Shown here: positions 240 to 58,939 of the stretch, piece after piece | Layout of the letters: the number at the start of each line of letters is the position of its first letter | Position numbering within the stretch: the first letter of the stretch is position 1 | Assembly: GCA_028023455.1 (NCBI GenBank) | Contig: JAQFVV010000010.1 | Coordinates: forward strand, 11,408,001-11,472,000 | DNA from: Epiperipatus broadwayi | Taxonomy: Eukaryota; Animalia; Onychophora | Direction of reading: 5' to 3' | DNA length: 64,000 bases | Notes under the pieces: model-generated | The model's database searches: none | Seen by the model: only the letters and a program-made list of their open reading frames with translations | Told to the model about the DNA's origin: nothing | Made by a program: the position numbers and the translations under genes

Positions 240-2220
240 GAAGTGGATTAACATTTATGCCAGTTTTTGTGTTAGTATCTTCTGCTACACATTCTTGCTT
301 TTCCTCGTTAGGCTGGATCAGCTAGAGTTCTTGTTTAGGTTTCAAAGATTGATCTTCCAAGTCAGAATCAGTTTTTGTAAATGTTAACTGTATTAAATCT
401 TCACTCCTATCCTTTCGCAATTGGTTTATGTGTTTCCATAATAATTTGTCTTTGTTTATACAAATGATTCTAACTTGTTTCGATAGATTGCTTTCCTTCA
501 AAATATATTTAGGCTATTTTTTGCCCACACTCATTCACCTGGCACAAACTTACATGTGGTAGATTATTTTTAAGTGTAATTCTGGAGGTGATTTTCCTGA
601 TTTAGCAGCTGGAATCAGATACTGATATGTTAGTGTGGTATAAATTGCTTCCTGTATTTTCATTTTTCACAATATAGTTCCTGATACTTTCAATTTTGCC
701 CCTCCATTAGATTGGGTATGATAGGGAGCATATGTTTTTTATCCTCCACTCTTTCAGTTTTCGAATTTGTCCAATGTAAACATGATTCATTGTCAGAAAT
801 TAAAGTTTCAAGAAGGCCATGATCTAAAAAAGTTTCACGTAATTTTTTGATTGTCACATCGTATCTAGTGCTCTTAATTTGTGTTCTGCTCCTCCCCTCC
901 CCGAATATGCATCTTAATTACTGTTTGGCTATTATACATAGCTACAGGCTAAAGCTTTTGCTCTGGCTATGCCTGGGTAACCTTCATGCAATAAATGGAA
1001 AATTAAATCTATACCCTTAACTGGGATTAGTACATGATCACTCATCAGAATAGTCTTTACAAACTGATAAATTATCACAGGCATTTGATAATTCTTTATG
1101 AAGAAATTTAGGATGTTTATTACGTCAACATCCTCGGATTTAGCTTATAATACACTGGTAACCATCATCTTCCTTTGCCTAACCAGCTACTGTTTTATTG
1201 TTAAAAACTTGCGACTTTAGCTCATTTATATGATTAACTTCAATTTATTTTTCATCTCTCAGTCTCATCTGGTATGCGAGACAGTGTAGTGTGTTGGTAT
1301 GGCCAATTTACTTTCCCTTTGCATATTCTAATGAATAATCATCGCCAGCGAGTATGTTTAGCCATCTCAGCATGTGAGTGATAGGATGCTCAGAAACTTG
1401 TTTGTTTCCAAAAATTTCCAGTAAAGATTTAGTAAGAGCTTCTTTGACCAGCAGACTGTAATTTTTTTCAGCTGTGGACAATGTGCACAAAGCATAGATA
1501 ATAGATTTTTTTATCTGTGTGTATTGGATGACATTTTATTGCACCAATTCCAAATTCAGATGCTTCCATTGTAAGCATAATTTCCATAAAGCTGTTATAA
1601 TGAACAAGTAATTTTAATTTTTCGAAGTCAGTAATAATTTGGTATGCATAAATGGTTGCTCTTGTATCGACCTCCAGTTCCATTTCTGGTTCTTTCTTAG
1701 TAAGTCGTATAAGGGTCTGGCTATAAGAGTTTTGCCCTTCAAAAAATTCTCAAATGATTTTACAAGATTAAAACAAACTCGTAATTGTTTTACAGCTTTG
1801 ATATTTCCAGGAGGAGTACCTTTATTTGAAATTATATGCCTTGAAAATTTAATTTCGCTCATCTACCAGATACATTTCTGGATTTGCAATTTTGCTTCCA
1901 AGTCATTCAGTTTTTTGCACACATTATATAAACGACTTCTTGATTCATTTTCCATTATAGTGGTAACTAGAATGTCATCAAAAAATGGTACAACGCCCTC
2001 AAATCCATTAAGGTGGGTCTCAATATTCGACTGGAAAGTACTAGGTGCAGAAGTTATCCCAAATGGAAGTCATTTGCACCTAAATAACCTTGCATGAGTG
2101 ATTAATGTACTACTTAGTATTTCTGAAGCTTTGTTTGCCAACAGTATCGGGTGGATTCCTGAGTTAAGATCTAATTTTGCCAAGAAATTAGATCTTGAAA
2201 TGATTTCTTCAGAAAATATA
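240..2220 (-). mobile_element. Decayed Ty3/Gypsy LTR retrotransposon pol (RT-RNase H-integrase order), many stops and frameshifts
   Basis: Minus-strand translations: RLFRCK*LPFGITSAPSTFQ (RT, ~2020-2090), VKQLR...IARPLYDLLRKNQKWNW (RT thumb, ORF 1614-1862), TLSTAEKNYSLLVKEAL (RNase H, ORF 1308-1490), LETLISDNES and APYHTQSNGGA (integrase core, ~697-812). Confidence 0.85.
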
Positions 2221-3760: not shown

Positions 3761-6282
3761 CTATAAGAAATTATGAAACATCCATGACATTAGAGTTAAA
3801 ACAATTGTCATAGAAATCTTTTTTTTTTTTTTTTTTAAAAAGTCAATTTGTATGAGGATTCAGGAATAGTTCCTTGTAATGTAAAACTAGTAGAGAATAT
3901 AATTATTTTTATATGAAAACTAAGAATTAGAGATAAATGGCAAGTTTAAAATATGGAAGGTAGGATTAATAAATAGATTGGTACTCTTTATATTTGCATC
4001 TAAGACTAAATTTGTAAATATATCACAAGAATCATTTTAATGAATATCATATCCTACTGAATAGGAAAGAATAATTATGCAATATCCAACCCAATGTGAG
4101 AGTTAAAACAATTATGGTAATAAATTTATATACATAAATGGAGGGGAAGGGGAGGGAAGTAGGGATTACTAATTCATACAAAATATGAAACTAGAATAGA
4201 AGAAATTATCAAAGGCAATAAAAGAATAAAAACCAATAACATAGGAACATAAAACAAATATCTTAGGATAATTTTTATTTTTTTATGTGAATTCCAGAAA
4301 TGTGAGAAGTTCAAAAAGATTATTTTACTAAGTTAAAAAAAACAAAAATAAAATCAGCAAAAAAGTGAAACACATATGGAAGAACTAAAAATGCATGCAT
4401 GAATGTAGCAGTAAATGTAAACGCACAGGATAATCATATTTTATTTAAAGGCAATTAGTATTATTATATATAAAATTTATTAAGTTTTATTTTAGTAATA
4501 ATAATAATTTATCATTATTGTGTATTGGTATCTTACTAAAGATGAATTGCTAAAAAATTCCAGAAAAGATAAATCTTTCCCTTATTCTTCCAAGAATTTA
4601 AATTTATTATATAACAACCTGCAATGAATAACTGGAAAAGTAAGGTCTAATAAATCAATTCAATAGTAAATAAAATGTTTATTGAAGTATCAATACCTTA
4701 AGGATGATAAAAAAAAAAAACATTATAAGGCTTTAGGAAAGTATAATATCTTATAAACATACATGATGAATTTTTTTAATTATTAAAATTTTTGATACAT
4801 TATTCGTATATCTTTTAAAAACCTATGTTAAAGAATATTTAATTCTGAAATTTTAAAACTAAAATTTGAAATATACTTTTGATTAATCTACACTTATGTT
4901 CTTAACAAACATACATTTTTAGTGATATATGTGTGCTTTTAGTATAAATAAATGCATATTTTCTGAAACAGTCTGTTATTTATAATTCCAAGAAAATATG
5001 AATAAAAATGTAAATGTTATGAGGACAGTGTCCTAGAAAATAATTAAGCTTCCTTTTTATATCTTGTTGAATATGAAAATAAACACTTTCATAATTTAGA
5101 TATTATAATATAAGCATTATTCTGAGAATAAATAAAATGAACAAAAAATTGGGCAATTGATCCATTTAAATACAAGAGAATCTTTCCAAAGAATGAATGT
5201 TTATAAACAGATTTTAAGTGGCAAGAATCAAAATGCATCTGACAAGGATGGTTATAGATTTTAACTATTTTTTTTTTTTTTCTTGCATATCCTTCATAAA
5301 TTAAAGTCTTTACTCATAAGTGTCATAGAAGTATTTCTTCCTACACCATAAGAATTTAATCTAGCATGACACAAACAGATATAATTAAACAATAATGAAG
5401 ATGAGTTTTTTCTTCGCCATCAGACATTTAAGAAAGGATAATGTTACTAACAGTATTGATTAAAAAAAAATATTAGAGTTTTGCCCAAGTTTATAGATTA
5501 ACCACATTTGAGTAGATAATTACAAAGAATATATCTACGAAAACGAATGAAATTATGTTTTAAGAGATATGCATTATCATTACACATATATATATATACG
5601 TGTATGAATGATAATGAATAAATCTCTAATTATAATTCATTTAGCACATTCTTGTTTTCTTGCTTAAAGTTCCAAATAATTACATTTATCAAAAAAAAAA
5701 TTAATTATATATTTTTCTAGGTCCTACGAAGTATGAATAAGAGGTACAAATTAGAAAGCAATACTAACCTCAAATATTTATTTGTATATATTCCTAATTA
5801 TTGTTTTATTTTGTTAAGATTATAATTATATTTTTTCCACTGTCATATATCTCTTGATTCTGATTCCATCTTACCCCCTGTGATCTGATGTGCTTTTTAC
5901 ATGGGTGATTGTAATAGATGGGTAGGAATTAAGTGTGGGTATGCATATAGTAGCATCTATAATGATTATTCCGATTTGCATGGTATCTATACTTTATAAT
6001 CTTTGCAAGTCCAGACCGTCAATTCAATTAATATGATTATTATGCTATTTTAATCCATATCTCTACTTTCGACCATTACAATATACATATATAAAACAAA
6101 AAACTTCTATGCAAGTGTAACAAAAATATCTATATATTTGTTATATGAAAATAAATTTCGTCTCTGTACATATATTTTATAATTTTGAACACTAAATACA
6201 GTTGTTCATATTTGTGAAAGATTATTAACTACAATATAATAAAAAATATGCAAAGAATAAAAATTAAAAATTGAATACTTAC

Positions 6283-9182
6283 ATAAACATCTTCTTCATT
6301 AATGCTATTATTTCGTTCTTCTTGTAGAGTAACAAACTTTTTAATAATTTCAAAAAGGGATGGTGATAAATATTTGAAATATTTATGGAAATCAAATTTT
6401 ACAGCCAAAGATGCAAAAATTGTATTATTAACTAGAGCAGATCTAAGATCAGTTAATTCTCCAGGACTTCGATCATGAGCATCTTCATAGAGGTAACGTG
6501 TAATTAAATAATCCAGTATTGCATCGCCTAAAAACTCTAATCTTTGATAACAATCGGTAATTTTGTTATAATAATATGAAGGATGTGTAAATGCTTGTAG
6601 GAGATAAGCTTTATCTTTAAAACAGTAATTAATTTTCTCTTCAAAACCACTGAAATCTTGAAGAAAATGGTTTAATTTTTCTGATGCACTTGGAATGTTA
6701 AGAAGAGGTGAAGGTGGAAGTTCCCAGCAGCCAAAGTTATAATCATTTCTGTTATCATCGGCATTATGCATTTTCAACTCAGGAATTTTGGGTAAAACTT
6801 TTAATCCTAGCCATGTCATGAATAAAAGAGCTCCTTGCGAACCACAAGATATTAAATAGGCTCCTATCAAAGCTTCAACACAATCAGCAATACTTTTGTC
6901 AGGAATACTATGTTGTGTGAGTAAGTTGTAAGGAATTATGTAAGGTTTATAGTCAGAAAGTAGGTTAGAGCCCATCTTTTCTGGTTGTAAAGCTAAATCT
7001 TTGGATACAAGATAACCTGGAGGTAACCAATTATCACTCGGTTCAAATTTATTAGCTGCCATGCAAAGTCCCAGACCTTTCTTCTTCCCCAATCTATACA
7101 GATTAAGGTTGCTTACTTGTTTACTCCGTAGAAATGATAATTTTCCCTCATGCATTCTAACATATTTAAGATAAAGATAACTTGTGACTGCATGTTTTAA
7201 AAAAGAATCACCAATTGTTTCTAATCTTTCTAAATTAAAAATATCATTTGCGTTGGACATAGTAAAAGCTTGCAAAATTGTACTAGGACTGGGTCCAAGG
7301 TGACATTTTAAGTTGATTTGTTCATCAAATTTTATTTTGACTTTTTTCTGTGAAAGACTTTTTTTATTTTCAATAACACATTTATTTTTAAACTCATTTG
7401 ACAATAAATCTAATTTATTAAAATATTCAGAATTTTCTTTATCATTTATAGGTAAATCAGAATCAATATTATATGAACTATAATTGTGAACTTCATCCGC
7501 TGATTGTGAATTATTAATCTCAGAAGGTTCTTTATGTTTTGAAATATTTTCAAGCAAATTGATTTCTAAAACAACTTTGCTCAAGTTATTAATAGGCGTT
7601 TTGTCAAAAAAAATGCCTTCTTCTGGAGAAATAAGAGCTACTTGTTCAAAATAGTAAACTATATTTTTCTCATCATCAGTATCATTAATATAGGAGTTAT
7701 CTTCCAAATTATCATCAAACATTTCATTAATGCTACTTTTGGATTTCTTAGGTGATGGTTTCTTTTGAAGTAAAAAAAAAATTGAATATTTCTGTTTTTT
7801 TTCTGGACTAACATTATTTTTAAGTGGTGGACTAACTCGATCATTGTCATCATCATTAATTTCTTGTAAAGATAATGGTGAAGATCTATTGGAGTAAGTA
7901 CTTTCCTCAAATGAATTATTTGGAGAACATGTTTTGATATACTCTATTACATCTGGAATATGAAGTTTTTTGCTCTTATCAGCTTCAGAATCATCTGACC
8001 AAGATAAAGCATCATTATCTTCCCAGGCACTTTGAAAGTAAGTAGGAGACCCAAATCTGTAGTCATGATTTTGCATGTTAGCTGAATGAAATGGAAACTG
8101 TGACATTTCTTCAAAGTCATCAATATCATCTTGATTAATTTGAAAACTTGATGACAATCCATTACCCTTACAATTTACGCCATTCATACTTAATATTTCC
8201 ACATGTCCCCCTATATTACCATTACGACACCATGACACATCAAGATCATCATCAAGAGATTGTAATGGTGAATAATATTTAGAAAAATTGCCATTTCCTA
8301 AAGCAAAGTTATTATCCCAATTTCCGATTTCCATTTCACAGTCATCATCATCTTCATCACTTTCAAAAATCACTTCTTTTTTATCATTTACCATTGAATT
8401 ATCCCAGCTACCTATTGGAAAATTAGAATTTTCAACTAATAATCCTGATACTATACATGACATAGGCATAGGCTTAAATGCTGGTGGAATATATGTTCTA
8501 GATGGTTTTGCAGTCTTTTCTTCTTCAATTATAAGAGACCAACTAGCTTGAAGAGGAGGCCAATCAAAATCAACTGGAACTACAGTTTGCATAATATTCA
8601 TCTCCAAAGAAACTCTTACTCTTAATTCTTCAGCTAAAAGTAAAGAATTAGTTCGATACAATATGCTAGGTAAGCACACGGCCTTTCTCCATAAAGAGGC
8701 AGGAAAGGGATGGATTTCACACAATTCTGGTACTAAAATCTGTTTTTGATGTAAATCTTCTCGTTTAGCCTTTTTTGTTTCATCACTACTGGTAGGCAAT
8801 GCTTTTCCTTTCCTATTCATATGTCTAGAGGATAACATATTTAATCTTGATGAAGTTCGATCCACATCTAATAAGGGTTGTTTTTTATTAAAAATATTTT
8901 TACCATACTTTGACAAATAGTAACTTTCAAAAGTATCGAATTCTCCATCCGGAAACTGACTAACAGGATTTAAATTGACACAAATTTCTGCAACATAATA
9001 TTGCTCCGGTTGATCATTGTGCCGATACCAAGGCATAACTACAGCATCTTCGTACTTTGCCTTGTCAAAGTGAAAATTTTGACGTTGTTGTTCTGTAGGT
9101 GCCATGACTTTATCACTGGTGATTGGATAAATAACATCAGCAAACTCCCAGTCAATGGTCCATTCTGAACTTGTTTTACTAT
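6283..9182 (-). CDS. Dcr-1: Dicer-1 exon, 2900 bp: end of platform, PAZ, long acidic linker, RNase IIIa, N-terminal half of RNase IIIb
   Basis: Acceptor ttaacag|AT AGT AAA at 9182 (WTIDWEF). Donor GAT GTT TAT|gtaagt at 6283/6282. Overlaps the ORF-track entry 6229-9105, which shows PAZ (DAVVMPWYR...QPLLDVD) and both RNase III signatures. Confidence 0.96.
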
Positions 9183-15100: not shown

Positions 15101-18100
15101 CATAAAATGAGCTAGCAATGTCTATTAGAGTCTTGATCTACATAAAATTTTGGTAATATTGGGATCTTATGATTTTATTGACATGAGTAAAAAATAAGAG
15201 TGTCATTTTTTTTCATTAGTCATCCAAGTCATGTGTGATAAAAATGTACCGAATGAGTTTGAACTCAGTACACTCTAAACAGATATTTATCTAGATTTAA
15301 AACAATCTAGTGGCACTCGTGGGAAAACACATATACTTAGCTAAACTGAATAAAAAGTGATCCCATCCCTTTTCCAACTTATTAACTTTGTGTAATATGT
15401 TTTATAAGTTGTCATGAATAGCACCAGTGTGTGTGTGTGACCATGAATGGTCTTATATGGTTGGAAAGAAGAATAGAAAGGATTCTTTGTTAAAAGAACC
15501 TAGTATGGGAGATAAGCATAATGCACTCCAGGAATCTCAAAGTGGGTAATTTTATTCAGATGCTATATTTAATATTATTTTTATTTGATGAAAATGGCCA
15601 GTATGTTTTATTGTTCAAATGACTTCCCCAATATCTAAATATCATTAGATATTTAATGACGATAGTTTTAATTTTCATTGTTGTTATTTTAAGTATTAAG
15701 AAATGAGATAATTTATTTATTTCATTACTAATGTGACAGAATTAATGTATAGGATAGTTGCAATCGGGCTATAATGTTATATTTAATTAATTAGAAATAG
15801 ACACTCAAATAGAGCATGATATGCATATATTCTTATTTATATGTTAGCGTCATCCTTGTTTAATTATAAATTGTATTTTAGCTAACACAGTGAATTCATT
15901 TCTCATTGAATTTACTCGGTTACAAATGATGAACCGCTGAAGCATATCATTATCCTGTTTAGTGTTTAGTTATTGAATTATAGCAACTATCATTTTATCA
16001 CTCATCAATATATAGATTGTAATCAGTTATAAAGTAATAGCCTTTTATCAACCTTTTTGTCAGTTCATCTTTATTTATTCATACTGTTACAAATGACAGA
16101 TTACAAATGTATATTTTAATAATTAATAATTGCTTCTAATATTAATTTAAGTTACAAATGGTGCCCAATGTGGGGCACGATTTATAACAGAATTAATAAT
16201 CAATTTCTATTTTTATTAATTCTGTTATAGTATATATAGTTGGTAATAAGACCAGATTTAAAATAATTTCAGTCAATTATTTGTCATGGTTATTTAGTTG
16301 TTGTTTTTTTAATTTAACGTTTATGTATAATTTATTAGTAAATTAATGTTTTTGTATAATTTGTTAGTAAATTAGAATACTATTATTAATATATTGCTAT
16401 TTGATATGGACCAAAAAGGTAAATATAATTTTTAAATGAATGCTAGAATAGTTTTAATAATAAATAGAATACTAAATAATCAGATTAATGATATTTTTTG
16501 GCACACATAAAAATGTTTATAAAATAATTTGCAAAATCTGTTTATGTCTTTATAAGAAGACTATTTGGTAATATTTTCAAAAGAAACACAGCTTAGGGTG
16601 GAAATCATAAAAATGAAATCCAATGTAAAATTTATAATTTTGATATGAGTATGTTAAATTATTGTAAGTAATTGATCAGATAATAAGAAAAGAAAGCACT
16701 TGAGTTCAAAATCTCAGAAGTGAGTTGATGGTAGATAATTATTCACCAGGAGTTAGCAGGAAGAAGATTATTTTTCAATAAATAAAAGTACTCTTATATT
16801 CAGCTTCAACACTAGAACATCCAGGTGGATGATGAGCACAAAAATTGTTTCAGTCAATTTATAAAAATATTTTTTCCCCCTAGCTAATAGCATCATTCAA
16901 AAATTTTTATTTTCAAGTGATCCACTCCATCATCATCCACTATTGCTAAAATATATTTGCTACTTGCATAGAAACTGAGAAAAAAATATAATGGAAATAC
17001 AAAATACAAAGTTTATATAACTGAAAGACATAATGAATAACTGATTTATGACAATAATAATTCTTAGATTATTGTAACACATCAAAAATTGTAAGAAAAG
17101 ATACTTGTTTGAAACAAACATTTTAAAATTATTTTTATAAAATAAGTATTTACTTTATTATGAAAGAATATCTGAAATATAAAATATAATTATGCATAAT
17201 TAGGTAATAGCTTTGAATAAAATATGTGTTTATGGTTTGGGGTTGAAAAGTATGAAGTTCAAAAACAATTTCTAAAAAGTAACTCAATTGTATGCATCAA
17301 AGAGGATAAAGGCAATAGATTCGTCTTGATCTCAAGAGCTGAGTATACAAACAAAATGGAAGAACAGATCAATAAACTTAAGTTCACATGCATAACTGAA
17401 AACAATAATAAAATCAACAAAGATAGATTTATATCCAATATATTAAGGTCTCACAAAGATAAAACATTGTCTAGGGCTGAATATTTTTGAATATATCCAT
17501 CATCTTCCATACCTCCTAGAATGTTTGCCAACATAAAATTGCATAAAGAAAACTCTCCTCTTAGATTAATGCTCGACTTTGGAGGCATCCACTATTTCCA
17601 AACTGCAAAAATGATTAACCTATGGCTTATAGATTCCCTGGGATTTGGAAACCATACTATCAAATCTTCATTTGAATTCGTGGAAAGAAAAAATGCTAAA
17701 ATAAATTTGGAACACAAAATGACTGTATGCGATGTTAATGAACTTTATGGCTCTATTAACAGAAATAAATCCATTACCATCATCAAAGATGAATTAATTA
17801 AGAAAAATTATCCAAAAAAACGAATTGATTTTATAATAGAATTTTTGAAGTGGCTGGATAACAACATAGTTGTTAAATTTGAAAACAAATGGTATGTGAT
17901 GAATGATGGTTGGCCCATGGGACTGCCTATGAGTGGAGTTGTTGCTAGTGTTGTCATAAACCATTATGAGAACCAAATTCTTCCAAAATATTTCACAACG
18001 GATCCAACTTTCATATACTCTCGACATGTTGATGACATTTTTATTGCAGCAAAACCTTCCACCACTATTAACATACAAAATAAATTTCAAGCCATCTCAG

Positions 18101-21100
18101 GATTAACCTTTAGAAGAACAGAGGAAAACAAGGAACAAGAAATAAAATACCTAGACTTGTTAATAGAAAGAGAGAATACACACTTGGATTATAAAATGAT
18201 GATTAAACCACTGAACATACGAGGTTACACAAGTCCAAAATCTAACACCCCTAACACATATAAATGGGCAGGTATGAATGCGTTCCTTTTTAGAAATCAC
18301 CAATTATGTAAATATATAGCGGATAGGAAAAACAATATAAACAAATATACAAAGAAAATGACTAACATAGGCTTCAAACCTAATACAATCAATCAGAAAA
18401 TAAAAATATTTTATAGAAAACTAAGATATACATTGCCTAAAGGCAATATGAAATACCTAACAATTCCTTTTATACCTAATATAACACCAAATATTGCAAA
18501 AACATTGGCTAACAATTTTAAATTTAGCTTCAAAACACCTCCCAATACTAACCGGCTGATAAATAATGCTAAAGATAAAACAGATAGAGATCAAGCCCCT
18601 CATGTGGTCTATAAAATGGCATGCCCTCAATTAGGCTGCCATGCATCATATTATGGTGAGACTCGGGCTAACCTGAACACAAGAATTTATCAACATAGGT
18701 ATGTCTACAATAGGGTCAAAAATAAAAATGAAGGATCATCAGTATTCTGGGACCACCAAGCAGCTACAGGCCATGTATTTGAACCTAGTTCTGCCCAAAT
18801 AATTTGTACAGAAAAAAATGACGCCAAAAGAAAAGTTAAAGAAGCTTTCTAAATAGCAAATGACCTTAATGCCATTAATAGAAGAGAGGCATGTTTTGCT
18901 CTCTCTAAACAATGGACTAATTAAAAATTCAAACGCATTTGCAAAATCATAACAATTGTTAGTTACAAAGCTATGAGTATGAGATTCAAACATGAAATCT
19001 CGAAAGCGCTTAGCAAAGCTATTATAAAACAGGCAAAACTCACTATACGTATGCCACACACAGCAAGCTAGAGTAATCAATGGATGCCAGAAGGCTTGTG
19101 CATAAAATCCCCATCTAGTGCCTACTCATCCAACATCCCCAGACTAGTTTCTGGCTTGTGGCCTTCGTCAGTGAGGAGCCTTGGATCTGAGAGCATTTCA
19201 TCTAGATCTTAGGATCTAATGCAACCCTCCAGCAACTACCTTTTATCTCCATTTAACAACAAAACTACGAGTCTTAAACTGAAAACATCTTAATGTTTCC
19301 AATTCAAGCCCATCAGCTTATGTAGTTATATGTGTCTGAACCCAGTTCAGTTCCCATACATTTTGGTGTCTTTGGTTCTTTAATAACCATAGCCACCAAT
19401 ATCCTATTAGGCAGGATCAGTTCTAAGCCAATAAACATCACATGACCACCATCTCTTATGCTTGTGTATAACTGTTGTTAAAACAGGCAAAACTCACTAT
19501 ATGTATGCCACACACAGCAAGCTAGAGTAATCAATGGATGCCAGAAGGCTTGTGCATAAAATCCCCATCTAGTGCCTACTCATCCAATATCCCCAGACTA
19601 GTTTCTGGCTTGTGGCCTTCGTCAGTGAGGAGCCTTGGATCTGAGAGCACTGCATCTAGATCTTAGGATCTAATGCAACCCTCCAGCAACCACCTTTTAT
19701 CTCCATTTAACTACAAAACTATGAGTCTTAAACTGAAAACATCTTAATGTTTCCAATTCAAGCCCATCAGCTTATGTAGTTATATGAGTCTGAACCCAGT
19801 TCAGTTCCCATACATTTTGGTGTCTTTGGTTCTTTAATAACCATAGCCACCAATATCCTATTAGGCAGGATGTATGGAAACAGAGCTGGGTTCAGACCGA
19901 TATAACTACATAAGCTGATGGGCTTGAATTGGAAACATTAAGATGTTTTCAGTTTAAGACTCATAGTTTTGTAGTTAAATGGAGATAAAAGGTGGTTGCT
20001 GGAGGGTTGCATTAGATCCTAAGATCTAGATGAAGTGCTCTCAGATCCAAGGCTCCTCACTGACGAAGGCCACAAGCCAGAAACTAGTCTGGGGATATTG
20101 GATGAGTAGGCACTAGATGGGGATTTTATGCACAAGCCTTCTGGCATCCATTGATTACTCTAGCTTGCTGTGTGTGGCATACGTATAGTGAGTTTTGCCT
20201 GTTTTAACAACAGTTATACACAAGCATAAGAGATGGTGGTCATGTGATGTTCAAAGCTATTATGAATTAGAGTAAAATTATAGCTTCACTATTTTATGCG
20301 AAAAAGTCGCATACTTATAATTACAATTTTACTAGTGAAGAGAAAAACAATTTATTATTAAAAGACTGTATATAATAGTTAATTACCGTTATATTTATTA
20401 TTTTTATTGATATACATAAATTTGTATATTCATCATTACTATTATTCTGCTGTTAAATTAATAAAAAATTATATGATTATTATAAATTTAATTCTTTATG
20501 AAACCTTGTAAAACTATTAATGCTAGCAGGCTAACTTGAAGCATATGCCAATGCTAATTTTATTGATGATAGTTTAATGACTTTTTTTACAACGACAAAA
20601 AGTTTTAAATATACATGTTATAAGCAGAAAAATATATACAAAGAAAAAATGAATTATAAACACAAATAGCATTTAAAAAAATGTCATTTAGATGCTTTCT
20701 CAAAGCATCTTCAAACTTTAAAAAAAAGCAGATTTCATGATTGTAGTTAGTGTAAACTTGTCTGTAAATCTCCTACAGTTATTGTAATTTAATAATACAC
20801 GAACAGTGGAAAATTTTTATTTTTCATGAGATTAAATTTTAAAACTTCTCTCGATATTTTGTTTACTATTTATATCCAATACAATAGTAGTCATCTTACC
20901 TTTATTAAGAGGAACAATAAGAAAACAACTTGCAGCCTGACGTGGAACATATGTCATGTGTTGTTTTTTCAGTTGAAGTACATTAGAAAAGACGTAATTA
21001 TGAAAATGCTCTAAAATTTTTAATTCTCTTGAATCAAGTGTCAAACTATCTGTCACAAGTTTTAAATCGGCAGCCACTTCTCCTGATCGAGTAAAAACTG

Positions 21101-24100
21101 GAAATTCTGGAATCTTAATAAAGAAAAAAAAATGCTGCAATTTAATCATATACTATTATGAACATAATCAATTATAAAATTTATTTTTTAAAGAACTAAA
21201 CTTATAATATATAAATTATATTTATCACTGAATATCTTATTTTCCAATGAATTCTGTAAACAAAGCATTAACCTTTCGATTCTCATTTTTTGATAAAACC
21301 TTTTGGAGACTATAATATAGGAATATAATTTATGGCATTACTATACTATTCTAATAACAATCGGAACATATAAATGAAATTTATCCAATACTTTGAACAT
21401 GTTTTAGCAAAAATCTTTTATTGTACTTATATGCATACATAATCTTATGTTTCAACTGCCCTGCTGCAAAATAAGGAAAATGGTGAATTTGGTTAATATT
21501 TTTAATCGGAATAATAGAAGACACATAATTGTAATCTCACCATAAATGTACAAAAGATAAGCCAATTAAAACTAAGAAGTCTAGCAAACCACTTGAATTA
21601 TGGAAGTTAATGTAGCTCTAGTTATTGATCAGAGAGAACATCTATGTTATTTATTAGTGCTTCCTGGTCTGATGCTGCAGGTTGTTTAGTGTCTGAAGGT
21701 ATTAATTCCAACTCTTAAGTTGAAAGAATTTATCATCTTATACATATCTGTAATGAAATTAAATCCCAAAAAAAAACTTACAGAAAATTATATGAATTTT
21801 GTTCCTAATTATTACAAGGCATAGACAAGCTTGATCACAGGATAACTTTTTTAATGCCTATGAGTTTAAATCATACATACACTATTATATCTTTGATAAA
21901 ACCTTAGTTACTATTGCTGAAAATGTATGGATATTTATTTAACAGTCTGAATTATTTCATATATCACATATCTATTGTTTATTTATTAAACCATCTTTAA
22001 ATGCATTTCCATCAATTCCAGATTCCCTATATATGATTCTATTATAATGTATATGATTAATTTTGAGGTGTGCATGAGAGCGAATACATACAAACATTTT
22101 AAATAATACTATATAAGTTTAATTTGCACATACCAATGTGAAAAATACACAGATAAACCTAAGCACATAGAAGCAGAATAAATATTTAAAAAAAGTGTAA
22201 ATTCATCAGATATCACAAGTCAAAAGAATATTTTGAAGAATTGTAGCACATCAATAATGTAGCAAAATAATATTATTTTATAAACATTCTAGCCAGAATA
22301 ACATATTATTTTAGAACTGCTTAATATCCCTAACATGTAAAAATAATTAGGAATGAGGTTGACTTGATTTTATTATCTAACAAGATATACCTGGCCTATG
22401 TAAATACTGTCTTTTTTTTTTAACTGGTTGCTTTAACAAAATTTTTTTAAAGATTAATAGGATGGGGTGATTGGCGAAGGTGGAGGATCTGAAAATCATC
22501 CCCAAAATAAAATAAATATTTCAATTAAAATAATTTAATATAAATTTAAAATACATAAGTATAAAAAATCATATTTAAGATATTAATGTAATTAAGTAGG
22601 ATATTAATGTTTCTATCTCAAAATTATATAAAAGTAAGCTATATATATATATATATTACAAGAGAGCATGAGACCAAAAGATCTCTGAGAGATAAGTCCA
22701 GTTAATTCCTTAGAGCAACTATAAGTATAATTAACCAAATTCACCAGCATTATCAAAAAGTAAAAATAAGTTTAAGTAATACTCATCATTATGAGTGACC
22801 AATAATAAAATAAATCAACAGTCAATCTTGTGACTGAATTTGAAATTGGTCTATTGTAAACCAGACCTACTATTTATATTTAGTCTTTGCCAGCTTGGGC
22901 AATGCTAATCCCATAGAATATATAACTAGAAAAAAACAATAATGCTAGGATATTAAAACATGCTGATCATCATCAATGTTCTGGCCACTTAGTACCATTA
23001 GTATACTTGCCATATATAAATTTAATTTCTAATAGACTAAACTAAATAAAATGTAATGCAGGGGCTTTAAAGAATAATATCTTATGTGCCAACCAGAATG
23101 ATGATGATTTATCATCACTGGATGCCCAAAAGCACTAAAATACATCCCCATTCATATAATTAGGCCATTATGCATGAATCTAGCTCAGAAGAACACAAGC
23201 TAAAATAGAGTTATAGTGATAAAGATGATGATACAGTAAATAATATGATTTAAAAACCATTTAAAAGTCACTGGAATAATTTTAACAATTAAATACAAGT
23301 TTATTAACAACAACAAAAAAGTAATAAAATTAATGTCTCTAGAATATGGCTATACACATATGCCTTCTGATCTTGATTAACATAATACCAAAAAAATTAC
23401 ATGGTGGTTTACATGATTAATATACAAAATTCATGTTACTATATAGTGGTTAACATATAACACATATATGGGCACAGCTGCATGTTTTATTATTATATGA
23501 ATATATTTCAATTGACATTCAATAATGTCGAAAAAAAGATTAAATTTTACATGTGTCTATTTGACACTCATTCATATATGCACAGACATGTGCAGTACAA
23601 TTGATTTATAGTTCAATCACTATATAAATATAATAAATGATTAAAATTTTTGAGTTATATTTTTAATACAAATACTCTATGCTGGGTTTACTTAAACAGC
23701 ATATAGATATCCGCATATCAGATTAACATAAATTTAATTTTGTCAAAACAATAAATGACAATAATTTTTATAATAACAAATTCTATTTTGAATATATATA
23801 AAATTTACATATATACATATACATCAATAAAAAAAACCAGCTTAACAAACTCTATCACAGCTTTCTTTTTAAAATAATAGTCAATTTTTGACAGGTTAGA
23901 AAAATTCTTTTTTTTCTTCAGGTTATTCTTAATTAATTATAAAGCTTTTAGAATCGGCTTTAAATTAATCTAAAAAGATTTGTTTTGGTCAATGAATTCA
24001 ATCATTTCATTCACTCAAAATTTTACTTGCTTTCTTTTAAAATACATATCTTTAAATGTCATCTTTAAGGAATATTAAAAATAATTTTTTCAATAATATA

Positions 24101-36100: not shown

Positions 36101-39100
36101 TAATCTAAAAAAAAACCCACAAAAGTGATACATGTCCTATAAATTTGTATCATATTCTCCGGACAACACTATTTATTTTCAATAATTATTTTTTTGTGTT
36201 TTAAAAGTATTCGTGCTAATATTTTACTCAATAATAATTATTATTATCTACATGTATTTATTAATTTTAGAATATCCTCGTCAAATCATATCCAACTTTG
36301 TTCTCGCTTATGTGAATTAAATTATATAGTTTTTCATTTAGCTAAGTTTTTGCCCCGATCAAGTTTTAAATAAATTTTATATTATCAAAACATATTATTA
36401 TGTTATAATATTTCTATTTAGGGGACTGTTCTACTTTTAGAATGTCTATTTTATCTGTTTTAGACCGAATTATACAAATGTCTTATTTTTAGAAGATCTT
36501 ATGTCACACCTATTAAATATTTATAGAATTTATATATAACTGGATGTTCATTTTGATATACACCAATTCTTGACATATATTGCAGATCTCATTTGGATCC
36601 TAGATTTTCTGTTGCAAATATCTAATGATTATCCACTGAATATCAGTTATCTACTCAGAAATTTTCTTAGGACTCCCAATCAAAAGCAGTTTAGTTATAA
36701 TGATCCCAAATTATTTAATAAAAGGATGGGCAAATAGCGGCCCGAGGGCCACATGCATCCCGCTAAAAGTTTTTATGCAGCCACCAAGGCAATCAGAAAA
36801 ATCCACTTGAACTGAGATTTCCTACTTGTATGCGACCAAAGATTCGTCTTGTATTTTTCACTAGGATGGCCATGTCAATACACATGACAGTGTAGATATG
36901 ATATGCAGTGCTTTTTCAGTTGGTCTGGTTAATTTCAATTTTGTCTTTGCATTAGAAAATATATACATTTCCAACTTTACCTGAAGCTATGAACCCTCCG
37001 AAAAATGTAAAATCAGTGATGAATGTCATGTGTTTAATGAAGAATGGACAAACAAATATTTCTTTGGTAATACCTGGAATAAAGCAGTGTGTTTATTGTG
37101 TCATGAAAAAAAGGTGCGGCCCTTCGCTTCCACAAAGTGGCCCCCGATGCGGCCCTTCACCAACCTCTGCAGCCCCCGAGCCAAAATAATTGCCCACCCA
37201 TGATTTAATATGTTTATGCAAAAATGTTCTTTGAATCCAACTAACACCAGTTATTTGACTTTTAAATTTTTTTTATGTTATTAGTTATATTATACTACAT
37301 AATATTTTGTTTTTTTTCATAGTTTATGTATTATCTGTTACATTTTAAACTCCTCACTGAAGATATTTCTTGTTGGACTTACATATAGCAACCATTCATA
37401 AATAAGTATGGAGATTCCAACTTCAAAAAAAAAAAAAAAAACTACTCTAGAAATGACTTATGCAATATAAAAATCAATTTTTGAACCATAAACACATCCA
37501 CACATAGCATATACTGATATATTTTTCTGTTAATATGATATTAAACAATTCATATTAAAACTCTCCATATAGTAGTGCCATCTTGTGCTAATAAGAGCAA
37601 TCAATGGATGCCAGAAGGCTTGTGCATAAAATCTCTATCTAGTGCCTATTCATCCAATATCCCCAGACTAGTTTCTGGCTTGTGGCACTACTATATTGAG
37701 AGTTTTGCTTTGTTATGAATTGTTTAATAACATTTATGTGCTAGTATGAGATAGTGATCATGTGATGTTTAGTGGTTTAACACCAATCCTGCCTAATAGG
37801 ATAGTGGTGGCTATGGTTGTTAAAGAGCCAAAGACACCAAAATGTATAGGTGCTGAATTGAGTTCAGACCCATATGACTCTATAAGCTATTGAGCTTGGA
37901 TTGAAAATATTGTGTTTTCAATTTCATTCTCATAATTTTGTAGTTAAATAGAGTTAAAAGGTGGCTGCTGGAGGGTTGCATTAGATCCTAAGATCTAGAT
38001 GCAGTGCTCTCAGATCCAAGGCTCCTCACTGATGAAGGCCACAAGCCAGAAACTAGTCTGGGGATATTGGATGAATAGGCACTAGATAGGGATTTTATGC
38101 ACAAACCTTCTGGCATCCATTGATTGCTCTTATTAGCACAAGATGGCACTACTATATGGAGAGTTTTGCTTTGTTATGAATTGTTTAATAACAATTATGT
38201 GCTAGTATGAGATAGTGATCATGTGATGTTTAGTGGTTTATATATTTTGTGATGCTGTCTTTTAATTTCATCAGCAGAAATTTTTTCTTTTTGATATACT
38301 TCAGCACTAAGTCTAATTACAGCTCTTCAATGTATTCTATTCTCTGCCATATCTTCCCAATGAAAGCAATCAATATTGCACTTCCTTAGAATGCCATCAT
38401 AAAATATCCTTTAAGAAAGTCTTGCATCGTTCATTCATTTTACATGTCCAATCCAACGAAGGTGAATTTACAATAGTATCACATCTAGCAAGTTGAAGAA
38501 CATATTGATTGAATATGATACATTTTTCAATATGGAGAAAATAAAAACTGGAATCCATAACAGGAAAAGATGGACAGTGCCCAAATAAAGCTATTTATAT
38601 TAATCCGAGGGATAAACTTATATTTGGTTAGATATAATCTGTGATTTAATAAATGATTAGTAATAATCAATAGTTATTTAGCTGAAGTAGTTAGTGTTGA
38701 AGTTGCAAATGCAAAAAAATTGATACTTGTAGATCAAATTGTAATGATTTAAAAGATTAGTTAAATTAAGGTTTCAGAAATTACAAAAACATGAAGTCTA
38801 ATTATACATATATCAAAATTCTTGATATGACTCTAGATAAAATTCTGATTTTTTACAATTTAGATTAGTTCACTTCTAGTCAAGATAATTGTTACAAAAC
38901 TAAATTTAATACTGTATTGATTTTGTAGTCTTATAATTCATATCTGCTTTTAAAAAAAAATGAAAATCATCTTTCTATTTTTATCAGCACATCAATATAA
39001 ACATTGCTTTTTAAAATTGCACATAGTCAAAAATCACAGATATAGATTTACAGATGATAATTGAATGAACTAATGAACAAATATTTTACCTTCCATGTCA

Positions 39101-48100: not shown

Positions 48101-51100
48101 ATCCTCATCACATACAAAAACTATTTGATGGCATTTTTATATCAAACTGTCCATAAATGTTCATCCCATTAATATTTTTTACCTTATATATGTACATAGG
48201 AGTATGAAATTATTATATTCAAGTCTTACAGTTAATACAAAAAGTGGTAATATGTTGCAAGATTCTTGGCCAAATAAATTTTTCCCATTATGTGAGTATT
48301 CGCTCCATTGCCTGAGCTAGTGAATTAATACATCGAACTGTTCTGATGTATTATGTTTGAAGGGACAACTTTCATTGTGGGTGAGGATTAGCTAATGGAT
48401 TGATCAGATATACCTACAATAAAGGGAAGCTATAGATTTCATATTCAATAAATAACTCAAGGAATATATAAGGCATACACTTTTAATACAACCAAATATA
48501 ATTCTATAACTTTATTAATAAATATATTGAAACAAAAGAAATCCAATAGCTCAATTAGTAACATTACAAAGCTGCATGAAAAAAAAAGTTTAATAAAAAA
48601 CTCATAAATTGAATAATAAATGTAAAATTTGCCATATTTGTATGTGCACTTATACTTGGTATAACATATTTGTCACAAAGTACATTGGTAAAAAATTTAA
48701 AAAAAAATTAATTTATACATTGTAATCATGCTATTGGATATTTTTATCAGTGAAATGTAATAGATGAAAAGTAATAAAATGATGAGTTGTACTATGTAAA
48801 GGAAGAAAAAAAAGATAGTTTTGATGTCATAAGAATTTGAATTCGAAGAGTGTTTCTTTCTTATTTTACTCTATATAAACCTGTTCTTATGATATTTTAG
48901 ATTGATTATATTAAGAAGCTCAATTAGCAAGCCACTAGTTGAATATATTAATTCACTATCAATTTGTATATATATTGAATAATAAACTTGTTAAGTTATT
49001 AAAACTTTTGGTGTGTTGTTTTCTACAAATAATTACTGAGTGTATGGCTGCTAAATTAAAGTCTGGTCCCGTACATAACAATTTTATAAAGAAACTACTA
49101 TTCAATACTTTAAATATAATTAACTATAAGTACCAACAAGTAACTAGTTATTATATTTAAATCACAACACTATAGTTACTGCTTAAATAAACCAATAGAA
49201 TATCAACAAGGCAACATTCAATTAGAAAACAAACAGAATCTAGTGCAAAATTTTTAAAGACAATGATTGAAATCAATTACTAAAAGATTAAATCTGCCAT
49301 CTATTATCTAATTGAATTACCTTGACAATAAATTTCGGTAATCTATTGGTTTATTTAAACATTTGTTTTGCAATATGATGTGTATATAATAATAAGAGCT
49401 AATGGCATTTATGGGTTAAATCAATATATATTTAACTTATTTTCAAACATATATTATAGGCACTAATAAATTTGATATCAGATGAAAGACATTTCATGTA
49501 AGAGAATGTTAAAACAAATGATCTAACAATTGCTAATGCCCAAATTAGCATTTTTCAGTAACAACAATTCAGACAATAGCAACTTGATTTAACCTAAATG
49601 CAACAGAATTTATTTCATTCTAGCAAACTGCTATTGTCCAAATTGATTGATGTGCAACATCTTTACAGACTACTAAAAGAGATTACTTTTTTTATTAGTA
49701 AAAAATCCAGACAGTAGCATTTGTGAGATAATTTATTTTAGCGTTCTCTTATTATTATTAGAATTATATATATATATAATAATCAATGAAGCAAGTCATA
49801 TATAGCGTGACATTGCTTTTATGAGCTTGTATTTACAAATATGTAATATAGGGAGCGTACTGTGCCGAAAGCTAAGTTAAAATTTGATATGGATATAAAG
49901 ACTGCTTGCTTGTGGTATGAAAGTGAGGAGTAAATTGTGATCAAGAGAGATAGACTTATATGAATTTGGAAAGATCGGGAATTGTTAACGTTTAGAAAGT
50001 GTTTCGTTCACCATTTTAAACATAGAAGTTTAAAAAAAAAAAAAATTATTTTGATGAAAGTGTGTTAATGTAAGGATATTTTATAACTAAGTTGTATGTA
50101 AGATTAGTTGGTTTTTTTAGTAAGTTTATTACTAAAGATTTTTTAAATTTAAGAACAGTGATTTATTTGAGAAAAAAGATAATGTTTTGGAGGCCTAAGG
50201 TCGGAAAACACATGGTTATTGATCGAGCGTTTTTGAAAGTTTTTATCCCGTGCAAAGGGGTTCGACGAGTAGGAGAGGAAGTATATAGTCAAATATAGAG
50301 TAGGTGACTTGAAAAATACAGAATATGGATTGCATTTGTGTTTCACAATGCATATAATCGTCAGAAAGAAATCAGATGTGCTATGGTAGAGTGTACTATA
50401 TGTGATGAGGTTTATCACTTGAAATGTTTAAATATTACTAGGAAGGATGTAATGGGTTTATGGTTATGTAGACAGTGTGTACATGTGATAAAAGAGGTGA
50501 AAAAGTGGTTTCTAAGTATAGATAGCTTAAAAAGCAAGTCAGGAGAAATGGAGAAAAATGTAGTTGAGGAAGACAGGACAGAGTATGTTTTTAGTGGAGT
50601 GACAAGAAATATGAATGAAAAAATAGGTAATGCAATAGAGATGATTAGCCAAAGAATAAGTAAGATAGAGGAAGAGGTAAAGGATGTAGAAGCAAAATTA
50701 AAATCGTTAGAGACGAAGTGTGAGCAGATAACAGACTTATTGAATAGGAATGATAAGGAAGAAGTAGATAAGGAAGTCCAGAAGGTGGTAGAGAAGGTTA
50801 TGAATGAAGCAGAGAAAGTAGACTATGAGACAGTATTGATAGGAGATTCACTAATTAGAGAATGTGGAGATATAATTGCAAGGGAAAATAGAAACAGGTA
50901 TGTAAGAGTATGTTTGCCTGGAGCTAGAATTAGGGATGTTACAGATAAAGTAAAGAAGCAAGGGAGTAGAGATGTGTATGTTATGGTAGGGACTAATAAT
51001 TTGTCAGAGCCATCAGAGAGAGTAATGGATGAGTACATAGAATTGATTAGGAATTTGAGTAAGATTAAAGGAAGAGTAGGAATAGTTGGATTATTACCAA

Positions 51101-56571: not shown

Positions 56572-57247
56572 TATAAACAGGCAAAACTCTCTATACGTAT
56601 TGCCACTCAATGCAAGCCAGAGTAATCAATGGATGCTAGAAGGCTTGTGCATAAAATCCCCATCTAGTGCCTATTCATCCAATATCCCCAGACTAGTTTC
56701 TGGCTTGTGGCCTTCGTCTGTGAGGAGCCTTGGATCTGAGAGCACTGCACCTAGATCTTAGGATCTAATGCAACCCACCAGCAGCCACCTTTTATCTATA
56801 CTTAACTACAAAACTATGACATCTAAATTGAAAACACTATAATATTTTCAATCCAAGCTCATCAGCTTATATAGTCATATAAGCGTATATAGTCATATAG
56901 TTAAAGCCACCAAAATGTATAGATACTGAACTGAGTTCAGACCTATAAGACTATAAGCTGATGAGCTTGGATTGAAAATATTATAGTGTTTTCAATTTAA
57001 GTCTCATAGTTTTGTAGTTAAGAAGATCTAGGTGCAGTGCTCTCAGATCCAAGGCTCCTCACTGACGAAGGTCACAAGCCAGAAACTAGTCCGGGGATAT
57101 TGGATGAATAAGTACTAGATGGGGATTTTATGCACAAGCCTTCTGACATCCATTGATTACTCTGGCTTGCACTGAGTGTCAATACGTATAGAGTTTCGCC
57201 TGTTTTAATAACAGTTAAGAGCAAGCATAAGAAATGGTGATCATGTG
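56572..57247. mobile_element. Hammerhead repeat family fold-back (two inverted ~300-bp arms), 9-bp TSD candidate
   Basis: Minus copy has a mutated core (CAGACGA; 56677-56735); plus copy is at 57047-57105. AAATCTATA occurs at 56563-56571 and 57248-57256. Confidence 0.87.
57047..57105 (+). ncRNA. Minimal type I hammerhead motif, core intact, two stem substitutions
   Basis: ATCCAA GGC TCCTCA CTGACGA AGGT CACAA GCCA GAAA CTAGTC CGGGGA TA TTGGAT. Confidence 0.6.
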
Positions 57248-58294
57248 AAATCTATACAGAGTTAATTTAATTGCAGAAGTTGATTTCCGTATGATGAAAT
57301 ATTCCATCTTTTAATTTGTTAAAAGCAGCAGCAGTACATTGGAGACCGTGAGGGATATCAATATCTAAGTATAACTACAAAGATATTTAAACTGATTTAT
57401 ATTCTCAAGTTGATAACCGTCCAAGCTGAAAATTGCTGACCATTTTCTTCTGTCACTGGCTGATGAAAAACTTGATTTTTCTGAACAATAAAGAGCCAAG
57501 ATTGCACTCAAGATGTCAAGAGCATTCTATAGTTTTTTGAACATGCAAAAGTACAACAATCATCAGCATACTGTAAATTCAGAATTAAAAAAAGATGTAG
57601 TTCTTGTTTTTGCTTTTAATTGATTCAAATTAAATATTCCACCATCAAACCTGTATCATATTTTGATCCCTATTTGATTAAGATCCCTACAAAATTACAA
57701 AGACCATCTTTATAAAAATTGAAAACAATGTCGGAACAAGTACATATCTTTGTTTAACACCAGTTTTTATTTCAAATGCCTGATTTCCCATTGTAATAAT
57801 AACCTTTCCTCACATTCTATCAAGCAGAAGTTATACAAAGACTTCATAAAAATAAAGACTAACAAAATATTTAGTATGATAACTTAATTTAAACAAAATT
57901 TGATTAGAATTTATATTACTTTCAACTTATGGGAGTTTAAATAAAAGATTTTTTTTTTCTTTTGAGTCCAAGGTCATAGTTTTGGATTGTTTTTTAACTT
58001 TTCTAAAGATTTTAAGTATGGAAGGAAAAAAATGGAGAAAAAAAAAATAGTAAAGTTTAGTAAGGATGGGTGGGGATAGTAATTATTATACAGTGAAACT
58101 GTGCAGTGAACATAATATTAGTACCAGAAGTAGATTTTCTAAATGATGTATTTGTCATCATATGATAAAAAGTGTATACGTAGAGATTCCAGACTCTCAG
58201 TTATTATCCAGCGTTGCAAAAACAAAAAAATGTCTACAGGATTTTCACTGCTAAAGGTACAAATACACAGGTAAAAGAATAACTTGAAATATCA

Positions 58295-58939
58295 CATGAT
58301 CACCATTTCTTATGCTTGCTCAAGCTGTTAAAATAGGCAAAACTTTCCATACAGTAATGCCACTCAGTGCAAGCCAGAGTAATCAATGGATGCAATATGG
58401 TTTGTGCATAAAATCCCTATCTAGTGCCTACTCATCCAATATCCCCAGACTAATTTCTAGTAGTGGCACTACTGTATGGAGAGTTTTGCCTGTTTTATCA
58501 GCTTGAGTAAGCATAAGAAATGGAGATCATGTGATGTTTAGTGGTTTAATACCAATTCTGCCTAATAGGATAGTGGTGGTTATGATTATTAAAAAACCAA
58601 AGACCTCAAAATATATGGGTACTGAACTGAGTTAAGACCTATATAACTATATAAGCTAGTGAACTTGGATTGAAAATATTATTGTGTTTTTAATTTCAGA
58701 CTCATAGTTTTATAGTTAAGTAGAGATAAAAAGTGACTGCTTGAGGGTTGCATTAGATCCTAAGATCTAGGAGCAGTGCTCTCAGATCCAAGGCTCCTCA
58801 CTAATAAAAGCTACAAGCTGGGAATATTGGATGAGTAGGCACTAGATAGGGATTTTATGCACAAACCTTTTTGCATCCATTGATTACTCTGGATTGCACT
58901 GAGTGGAACTACTATATGAAAAGTTTTGCCTGTTTTAAG
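58295..58939. mobile_element. Hammerhead repeat family fold-back, ribozyme cores degraded
   Basis: Inverted arm 58295-~58465 then a + unit. The + core has decayed to CTAATAA and lost GAAA-CTAGTC. Flanks TTGAAATATCA (58284-58294) and TTGGAATATCA (58940-58950). Confidence 0.82.

Follow-up and report, generated by a model that had tools for sequence, protein, structure and literature searches.

A hammerhead-bearing 454-bp repeat of Epiperipatus broadwayi: a probable non-LTR retrozyme family with insertions of Penelope-like anatomy

An intron of a Dicer gene of the onychophoran Epiperipatus broadwayi is interrupted by a repeat with a 454-bp unit, each copy of which carries a sequence resembling a minimal hammerhead ribozyme. 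The repeat was noticed in a stretch of 64,000 nucleotides (assembly GCA_028023455.1, contig JAQFVV010000010.1, forward strand, positions 11,408,001 to 11,472,000), hereafter the window, to which all coordinates refer. Its presence raises the question of whether it belongs to the retrozymes, which have lately been recognised in animals as producers of abundant small circular RNAs and whose helper enzymes are still argued indirectly, and, if so, which machinery copies it and what its hammerhead contributes. A preliminary description, made from the letters of the window, had proposed a retrozyme-type family. The analyses reported here support that proposal: the repeat is non-coding, dispersed and abundant, every unit holds the motif, insertions have long target-site duplications (TSDs) and uninterrupted counterparts, the hammerhead is conserved with compensatory change in its helix II, and more than 10,000 candidates for the GIY-YIG domain of Penelope-like elements (PLEs) are found in the genome. 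The repeat is thus probably a non-autonomous animal retroelement of the retrozyme type devoid of long terminal repeats (LTRs), mobilised by the reverse transcriptase (RT) and endonuclease (EN) of PLEs, with hammerhead-cut monomers that could be circularised.

The insertion and its hammerhead motifs

The segment 19026-20251 is a single insertion of 1226 bp composed of two direct units on the minus strand (1.9 units) and of a third copy, truncated at its 5' end, that follows in inverted orientation on the plus strand. A repeat search of the window gave a period of 454 bp with 98% identity for the direct copies, and two arms of 382 nt, 98% complementary and spaced by 54 nt, for the inverted ones. 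The outer end of the minus-strand arm is designated end B, and that of the plus-strand arm, which is extended by a tail, end A. The components are as follows.

19014..19025, no strand: left copy of the 12-bp TSD, CAAAGCTATTAT (sequence and TSD script; six uninterrupted paralogous sites)
19026..19478, minus strand: full 454-bp unit of the minus-strand arm (repeat search; blastn of the unit against the window)
19026, minus strand: end B, corresponding to unit position 454, ...GCCUGUUUU (same basis as the full unit)
19479..19871, minus strand: second unit, 5'-truncated, covering unit positions 62-454 with 98% identity to the full unit (repeat search; blastn)
19870..20206, plus strand: inverted 5'-truncated unit, unit positions ~118-454 (repeat search; blastn)
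20207..20251, plus strand: tail, in which unit positions 1-45 occur again after the plus-strand arm (end A), at that end of the insertion only (blastn)
20252..20263, no strand: right copy of the TSD, CAAAGCTATTAT (sequence and TSD script)
19128..19186, minus strand: hammerhead motif 1, sense to the Dicer pre-mRNA, predicted cut 3' of C at 19142 (pattern search, descriptor scan)
19582..19640, minus strand: hammerhead motif 2, sense to the Dicer pre-mRNA, predicted cut 3' of C at 19596 (pattern search, descriptor scan)
20045..20103, plus strand: hammerhead motif 3, predicted cut 3' of C20089 (sequence, pattern search, descriptor scan)

The 12-mer CAAAGCTATTAT borders the insertion on both sides. 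Genome searches with each flank revealed uninterrupted copies of the host sequence, in which left-flank and right-flank matches overlap by exactly 12 nt, at six paralogous sites (contigs C177, C72, C6387, C6, C6282 and C61). The 12-mer is single in each of these sites and was therefore duplicated by the insertion. The boundaries 19026 and 20251 proposed in the preliminary description are the exact ends of the insertion, and its claims of a 454-bp period and of a non-coding unit were equally borne out, the longest stop-free stretch in a trimer of the unit being 54 aa, with no open reading frame (ORF) above that length. Its view of the units as tandem holds for the two direct minus-strand copies and has to be amended for the third, which is inverted on the plus strand and departs from a simple array. 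Because of this inverted copy, the 454-bp array is absent from the output of Tandem Repeats Finder on the window. The unit RNA is predicted to be strongly self-paired (-144.5 kcal/mol, z = -4.2), and a search of the element for an RNA polymerase III (Pol III) or tRNA-like head detected none.

All three arms contain one and the same type I hammerhead of 59 nt, whose core is intact. Helix I, which is open and holds the 5' and 3' ends of the motif, comprises UCCUCA/UGGGGA (6 bp), an internal loop and AUCCAA/UUGGAU (6 bp), the loop of motif 1 having G where the family consensus has A. Helix II consists of GGC/GCC (3 bp) closed by an A.A apposition, with the loop CACAA, and is followed by GAAA. Helix III is limited to A-U and C-G within the palindrome ACUAGU, and the cut site is a GUC triplet. 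Motif 3 lies where the preliminary description had placed it, with the core CUGACGA at 20060-20066 and GUC at 20087-20089, and the cores of the minus-strand motifs (19142-19171 and 19596-19625) are identical to it. All three arms have the conserved core nucleotides C3 U4 G5 A6 N7 G8 A9, G12 A13 A14, the A15.1-U16.1 pair and H17. As had also been noticed, the free position N7 differs between copies, with C at 20064 and CUGAUGA in the copy at 38 kb. In the window, a 30-nt pattern of the core has six matches for 0.03 expected, these being copies of one repeat rather than independent events. The motif has exactly the canonical metazoan type I build, with a 6-bp helix I, a helix II of four positions and a helix III of 1-2 bp with a palindromic loop of 2-4 nt, a class of hammerheads that act mainly as dimers (PMC4209133).

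Numbers, variation and insertion ends across the genome

The pattern CACUGANGA-N13-GAAA-N4-UCUGG has 93,192 matches in the 5.6-Gb assembly and none for the reversed control, and these intact cores represent a lower bound for the family, whose genome-wide count had been suggested as a check in the preliminary description. All contigs contain scattered copies, which form short arrays (1-5 units). The family is young (copies ~97% alike), and identity between units of the same insertion (97.3-97.9%) compared with units of different insertions (97.35%) does not discriminate with regard to rolling-circle copying. A search of sequencing runs found the sequence in contigs of unknown kind and in no run recorded as RNA. 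Such contigs from runs of four other organisms have a depth 10-100 times greater on the 150 nt proximal to the hammerhead, and most of them have U at N7; they establish that the family occurs there too, as opposed to its transcription, RNA ends or circles. A metagenome scan for the motif yielded 0 matches.

Of the further checks suggested at the outset, those on covariation in helix II and on conservation of the hammerhead region relative to the rest of the unit gave positive results. In the counts of the genome pattern, the helix II pair 10.2-11.2 is G-C in 44,103 copies and A-U in 9,243, against 1,687 copies with A.C and 1,248 with G.U (odds ratio ~190). The doubly changed, still-paired A-U state has been amplified as a subfamily with a compensatory change, and the single-change states are at the level expected from the decay of inserted copies. 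At the closing position, 7,511 copies have U at 10.1, pairing with A11.1; this U-A pair represents a transversion and is far too frequent to result from decay. Helix II pairing is thus kept or improved in every amplified variant. Among divergent copies, the hammerhead and its immediate flanks form the best-conserved part of the unit, with a mean pairwise identity of 0.89-0.93 over unit positions 241-390 (~0.92 for the hammerhead region) versus 0.79 over the upstream positions 100-255. The flank at unit positions 256-292 is as conserved as the hammerhead itself (0.93).

A total of 22 complete insertions were mapped, including that of the window and 21 other loci. All but one (21/22) start with a minus-strand arm and continue with a plus-strand arm, and correspond to a partial tandem with an adjacent inverted 5'-truncated copy. 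In each of these two-armed insertions (21/21), the hammerhead-sense strand has its 3' ends on the outside and its 5' ends at the inner junction, where they are cut short at unit positions that vary. The two outer ends differ: one falls at unit positions 449-454, ...GCCUGUUUUA, and the other 39-62 nt further on, from ...CAUGUGAUGUU up to ...UAUUGGCUUA, a combination found in 21/21 cases, with no insertion (0/21) having the same type of end on both sides. According to the TSD search, most of the 22 insertions are bordered by direct repeats of ~8-16 bp that are rich in A and T. Consistent with this arrangement, close pairs of motifs on contig C1 are minus-then-plus in 17 cases and plus-then-minus in none, and the search for the U-A copies showed the same order. 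Elsewhere in the genome, arms reach ~5 units. The insertions are dispersed, have TSDs longer than 4 bp and contain no LTR, primer-binding site (PBS) or polypurine tract (PPT), as expected of non-LTR retrozymes. Since it is at its 3' ends that the hammerhead-sense strand is left untruncated, this strand most likely corresponds to the template RNA.

This anatomy matches the published signature of PLEs, including the tail at one end. PLE copies occur as partial tandems with an inverted 5'-truncated copy and a tail of 30-40 bp at one end (PMC8557442). In vitro, the protein of the anole PLE PAc cleaves and extends both DNA strands and starts reverse transcription at two adjacent internal sites of the RNA, the sequence between these two sites being the tail (PMC11167929). 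In the unit of the E. broadwayi repeat, the putative start sites are located ~118 nt and ~160-180 nt downstream of the predicted cut site. It is quite possible, while still short of probable, that the asymmetry of the ends (21/21) is a footprint of Penelope integration in which each cleaved strand primes at a different one of two adjacent start sites, and that retrozymes are accordingly copied by the RT/EN of PLEs. Autonomous PLEs coexist with the family, as they do with known retrozymes: 10,241 GIY-YIG candidates were collected from the genome, all 150 that were scored being above the cut-off, several PLE ORFs are intact (800-901 aa), and an RT/GIY-YIG ORF is adjacent to the insertion in the window.

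Extreme 5' truncation also occurs in the family, as illustrated by a very short insertion with a 14-bp TSD, CCTTTAATTTATTA, on the reverse strand of locus L059 (~1065-1210 of its stretch). There, an inverted piece of the tail is joined at most ~5 nt from the hammerhead cut site and is followed by ~115 nt to ...GAGAGUUUUG.

Proposed route, alternatives and relatives

We infer that the unit is expressed, and that its hammerheads are catalytic, act as dimers and lead to circular RNAs. In multimeric transcripts, the ACUAGU palindromes of two hammerheads would pair with each other and thereby extend helix III. Cleavage by the paired hammerheads, 3' of GUC, would free monomers of 454 nt that could be closed into circles by a host RNA ligase. 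Arms of several units may have been copied from multimers that escaped cleavage, or from circles in a rolling-circle mode. Both strands of cleaved target DNA would prime reverse transcription, as they do in vitro for PAc, with the RT starting at the two adjacent internal sites described above. In such a scheme, the ribozyme more likely plays a role in processing and circularising the RNA than in integration itself, because PAc can insert in vitro without its hammerhead.

Several observations weigh against this scheme. The Rfam search proposed in the preliminary description found no hammerhead at gathering score in the window, and none at E<=10 in 1.5 kb or 79 nt around the motif, its matches to MIR7533 and MIR2655 being artefacts caused by the 382-nt inverted arms; a dedicated relaxed descriptor has likewise been required for hammerheads in which helix III is very short (PMC4209133). 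By itself, the 59-nt motif folds no better than shuffled sequences (z = -0.9). Where helix II is canonically closed by the pair G10.1-C11.1, 44,103 copies have A.A and the 7,511 mentioned above have U-A. The caveat already raised about A.A is softened by these U-A copies and by the axolotl hammerhead HHR_Amex2, in which the base of helix II is a U.U mismatch and which still cleaves, much better as a dimer (PMC7229834). The covariation counts reflect a few evolutionary events inherited by many copies rather than many independent events. With regard to a partner, neither the 30 GIY-YIG loci nor the 10 longer PLE loci examined, the latter with ORFs of up to 901 aa, have a CUGANGA hammerhead next to the ORF, and their only matches to the unit were separate retrozyme insertions, and the PLE adjacent to the insertion has no significant similarity to the unit (local score 25 versus 21.4 +/- 3.1 for shuffles); this search covered 40 loci and the adjacent PLE, a small sample of the more than 10,000 candidates. 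Finally, besides being dispensable for insertion in vitro, the PAc hammerhead has no reads ending at its cut site (PMC11167929).

The alternative that survives best considers the repeat as a PLE-dependent parasite comparable to short interspersed elements, in which the hammerhead is an inactive relic of a PLE pseudo-LTR, the region is kept for binding the RT and circular RNA is not produced. The negative Rfam result, the A.A in place of G10.1-C11.1, flanks as conserved as the hammerhead (0.93 at unit positions 256-292), the published behaviour of PAc in vitro and in RNA-seq (PMC11167929), and arms of up to ~5 units, which imply the existence of long uncleaved templates, would all suit such a relic. 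An inactive sequence would, by contrast, hardly account for 13/13 core nucleotides remaining intact in the amplifying lineages, for a compensatory A-U subfamily of 9,243 copies with both single-change states at the level of decay, or for the maintenance of the ACUAGU palindrome and GUC triplet across subfamilies. Moreover, retrozyme hammerheads of the same build, including one mismatched at the base of helix II, cleave best as dimers and give circular RNAs (PMC7229834). Taken together, these points make an inactive relic unlikely.

A second alternative is that of a satellite or foldback repeat spreading at the DNA level, by duplication, recombination or a transposase, and dispensing with an RNA intermediate. 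Tandem units and long inverted repeats are indeed present, and hairpin-type microRNA models spuriously match the inverted arms. Yet copies are scattered over all contigs as arrays of 1-5 units with a TSD of their own, instead of forming head-to-tail arrays that are long, homogeneous and confined to few loci, as satellites do, TSD lengths vary (8-16 bp), ends A and B are not inverted repeats of each other, the unit position at which inner junctions are cut varies, as it does in target-primed reverse transcription, and insertions are clean when compared with uninterrupted paralogous sites. This alternative is already largely refuted, and we consider it very improbable. As for a chance resemblance to a hammerhead within the repeat, the negative Rfam search and the fact that the six copies of the window are not independent are outweighed by ~17 fixed core and cut-site positions, three correctly placed helices, the covariation, the location in the best-conserved segment of a PLE-type element and the presence of the motif on the strand of the transposition template, which leaves this last explanation scarcely credible.

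The retrozyme reading places the family beside the metazoan non-LTR retrozymes, such as Rtz_331 and Rtz_353 of the axolotl and the 350-390-bp repeats of mussels (Cervera and de la Pena 2020, PMC7229834). Both are non-coding, occur as short tandem units that each have a type I hammerhead, and share a low GC content, TSDs longer than 4 bp, a highly self-paired unit RNA and coexistence with PLEs. The weak palindromic helix III, which implies dimer action, is another common feature, and the mismatch at the base of helix II has its counterpart in HHR_Amex2. The copy number is very high in both, with 126,247 motifs in the axolotl and 93,192 here, and the density is higher in E. broadwayi. In contrast, the sequences are unrelated, the 454-nt unit exceeds the 170-400 nt reported in PMC7229834, and circular RNA and cleavage have been demonstrated for those retrozymes, while they are predictions for the E. 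broadwayi element. The preliminary description had placed 454 bp at or above the long end of the range for animals; this view has to be dropped, since a 2026 preprint that proposes an origin of retrozymes from PLE pseudo-LTRs gives consensus lengths of 51-972 bp (bioRxiv 10.64898/2026.07.22.740005), a range that includes it. The E. broadwayi element is also compatible with the origin proposed there. The inverted arm and one-ended tail are not mentioned for retrozymes in PMC7229834 or in this preprint.

The likeness to PLEs (PMC4209133, PMC8557442, PMC11167929) concerns the partial tandem, the inverted 5'-truncated copy, the one-ended tail, the AT-rich targets and the variable TSDs. The hammerhead of PAc is ~85-92 nt upstream of the RT start sites, compared with ~118 nt here, and the tail reported for PLEs has 30-40 nt, compared with 39-62 nt. 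Unlike PLEs, the element has no RT/GIY-YIG ORF and shows no similarity to the PLEs sampled in the genome. Their minimal hammerhead also differs, its helix II being long and its helix I short, whereas the repeat has the canonical metazoan form, in which helix I has 6 bp and helix II is short.

Other comparable repeats are the SINE-like elements Sm-alpha and Sj-alpha of Schistosoma, satellite 2 of newts and pDo500 of cave crickets, a group in which several hammerheads act as dimers. These are short, high-copy, non-coding repeats with type I hammerheads that process multimers (in part PMC6765202). In contrast to them, the E. broadwayi repeat has no detected Pol III or tRNA-like head and forms dispersed copies of PLE type instead of long satellite arrays. 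The LTR retrozymes of plants (PMC4918200) are likewise non-autonomous retroelements, and the unit-length RNAs freed by their hammerheads become circular, yet these hammerheads are of type III and located in LTRs, and they have a PBS, a PPT, TSDs of 4 bp and Gypsy helpers, none of which applies here.

In the studies cited here, retrozymes have been linked to PLEs by co-occurrence and shared hammerhead motifs and, in Xenopus, by sequence and phylogenetic relatedness to PLE pseudo-LTRs. If the present reading is correct, a family of ~93,000 copies would provide direct structural evidence that the RT/EN of PLEs copies animal retrozymes, as well as a large natural data set on the choice of PLE start sites. 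The three natural variants of helix II (A.A, the U-A closing pair, and G-C changed to A-U) would be suited to testing the tolerance of dimer-type hammerheads. The strict two-end structure is a modest addition to what is known of retrozymes and defines no new kind of system.

The Dicer locus, its host element and older copies

The Dicer gene is on the minus strand, with a platform exon at 20832-21149 and an exon encoding PAZ and RNase III at 6229-9105, the insertion being in the intron between them. The Dicer pre-mRNA thereby contains two sense hammerheads 454 nt apart and a 382-nt, 98% complementary inverted repeat, a potential long double-stranded RNA hairpin. The same type of hairpin would be expected from any minus-then-plus insertion of the family that is read through by transcription.

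Within this intron, the sequence that immediately hosts the insertion belongs to an older PLE copy, of which it represents the 3' region. This copy is 5'-truncated, extends from 17224 to ~20360 apart from the insertion, and has an RT/GIY-YIG ORF of 443 aa at 17521-18852 on the plus strand. It belongs to a young and abundant family (copies 98% identical; 1,718 candidates at first look) with the same minus-then-plus inverted pairing and with variable 3' ends (positions 104-132 of the right-flank query, a few up to 195). Some 120 nt downstream of its GIY-YIG ORF, at 18970-19014 on the plus strand, is a hammerhead-like motif, GCU-AUGAGUA-U-GAGAUU(loop)AAUCUC-GAAA-GCGC-UU-AGC, in which helix I has 3 bp, helix II has 6 bp and the palindrome is AGCGCU. 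This motif has A and U in place of the core C3 and G8, and an extra base after A9. Its pattern has 1,524 matches in the genome, and among the first 100 copies listed, which include different loop-2 subfamilies, 99 have A..U and none C..G. The retrozyme is inserted 14 nt past the putative cut site of this motif, and the TSD starts 3 nt past it. A different candidate hammerhead, ACCAA-CUGAUGA-UUGCUGGUUUAGCAU-GAAA-UAUGUA-UA-UUGGU, is found beside two GIY-YIG loci, L037 (~1169-1202, plus strand) and L043 (minus strand), and suggests that the genome holds further hammerhead families.

Three older insertions of the family were identified in the window.

37557..38240, both strands: related subfamily, short minus-strand arm then plus-strand arm (pattern search, blastn)
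56575..57248, both strands: minus-strand arm then plus-strand arm, 9-bp TSD AAATCTATA (pattern search, blastn, TSD script)
58287..58937, both strands: old insertion, ~81% identical, minus-strand arm then plus-strand arm (blastn)

The first has an intact CUGAUGA hammerhead at 38029-38058 in its plus-strand arm, which ends in the tail ...GUGAUGUUUAGUGGUUUA. Both hammerheads of the second are decayed, one having the core CAGACGA and the other GGU in helix II together with a change of U1.1 to C, and the hammerhead of the third has been destroyed by a 12-nt deletion and core substitutions. Such decay of the motifs at 56.6, 57.0 and 58.5 kb is expected, because an inserted copy is no longer under selection. 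Between the first and second of these insertions, at 50338-54700 on the plus strand, is an element resembling long interspersed elements, with a PHD finger, a GDSL esterase, an AP-type endonuclease and reverse-transcriptase frames split into several ORFs.

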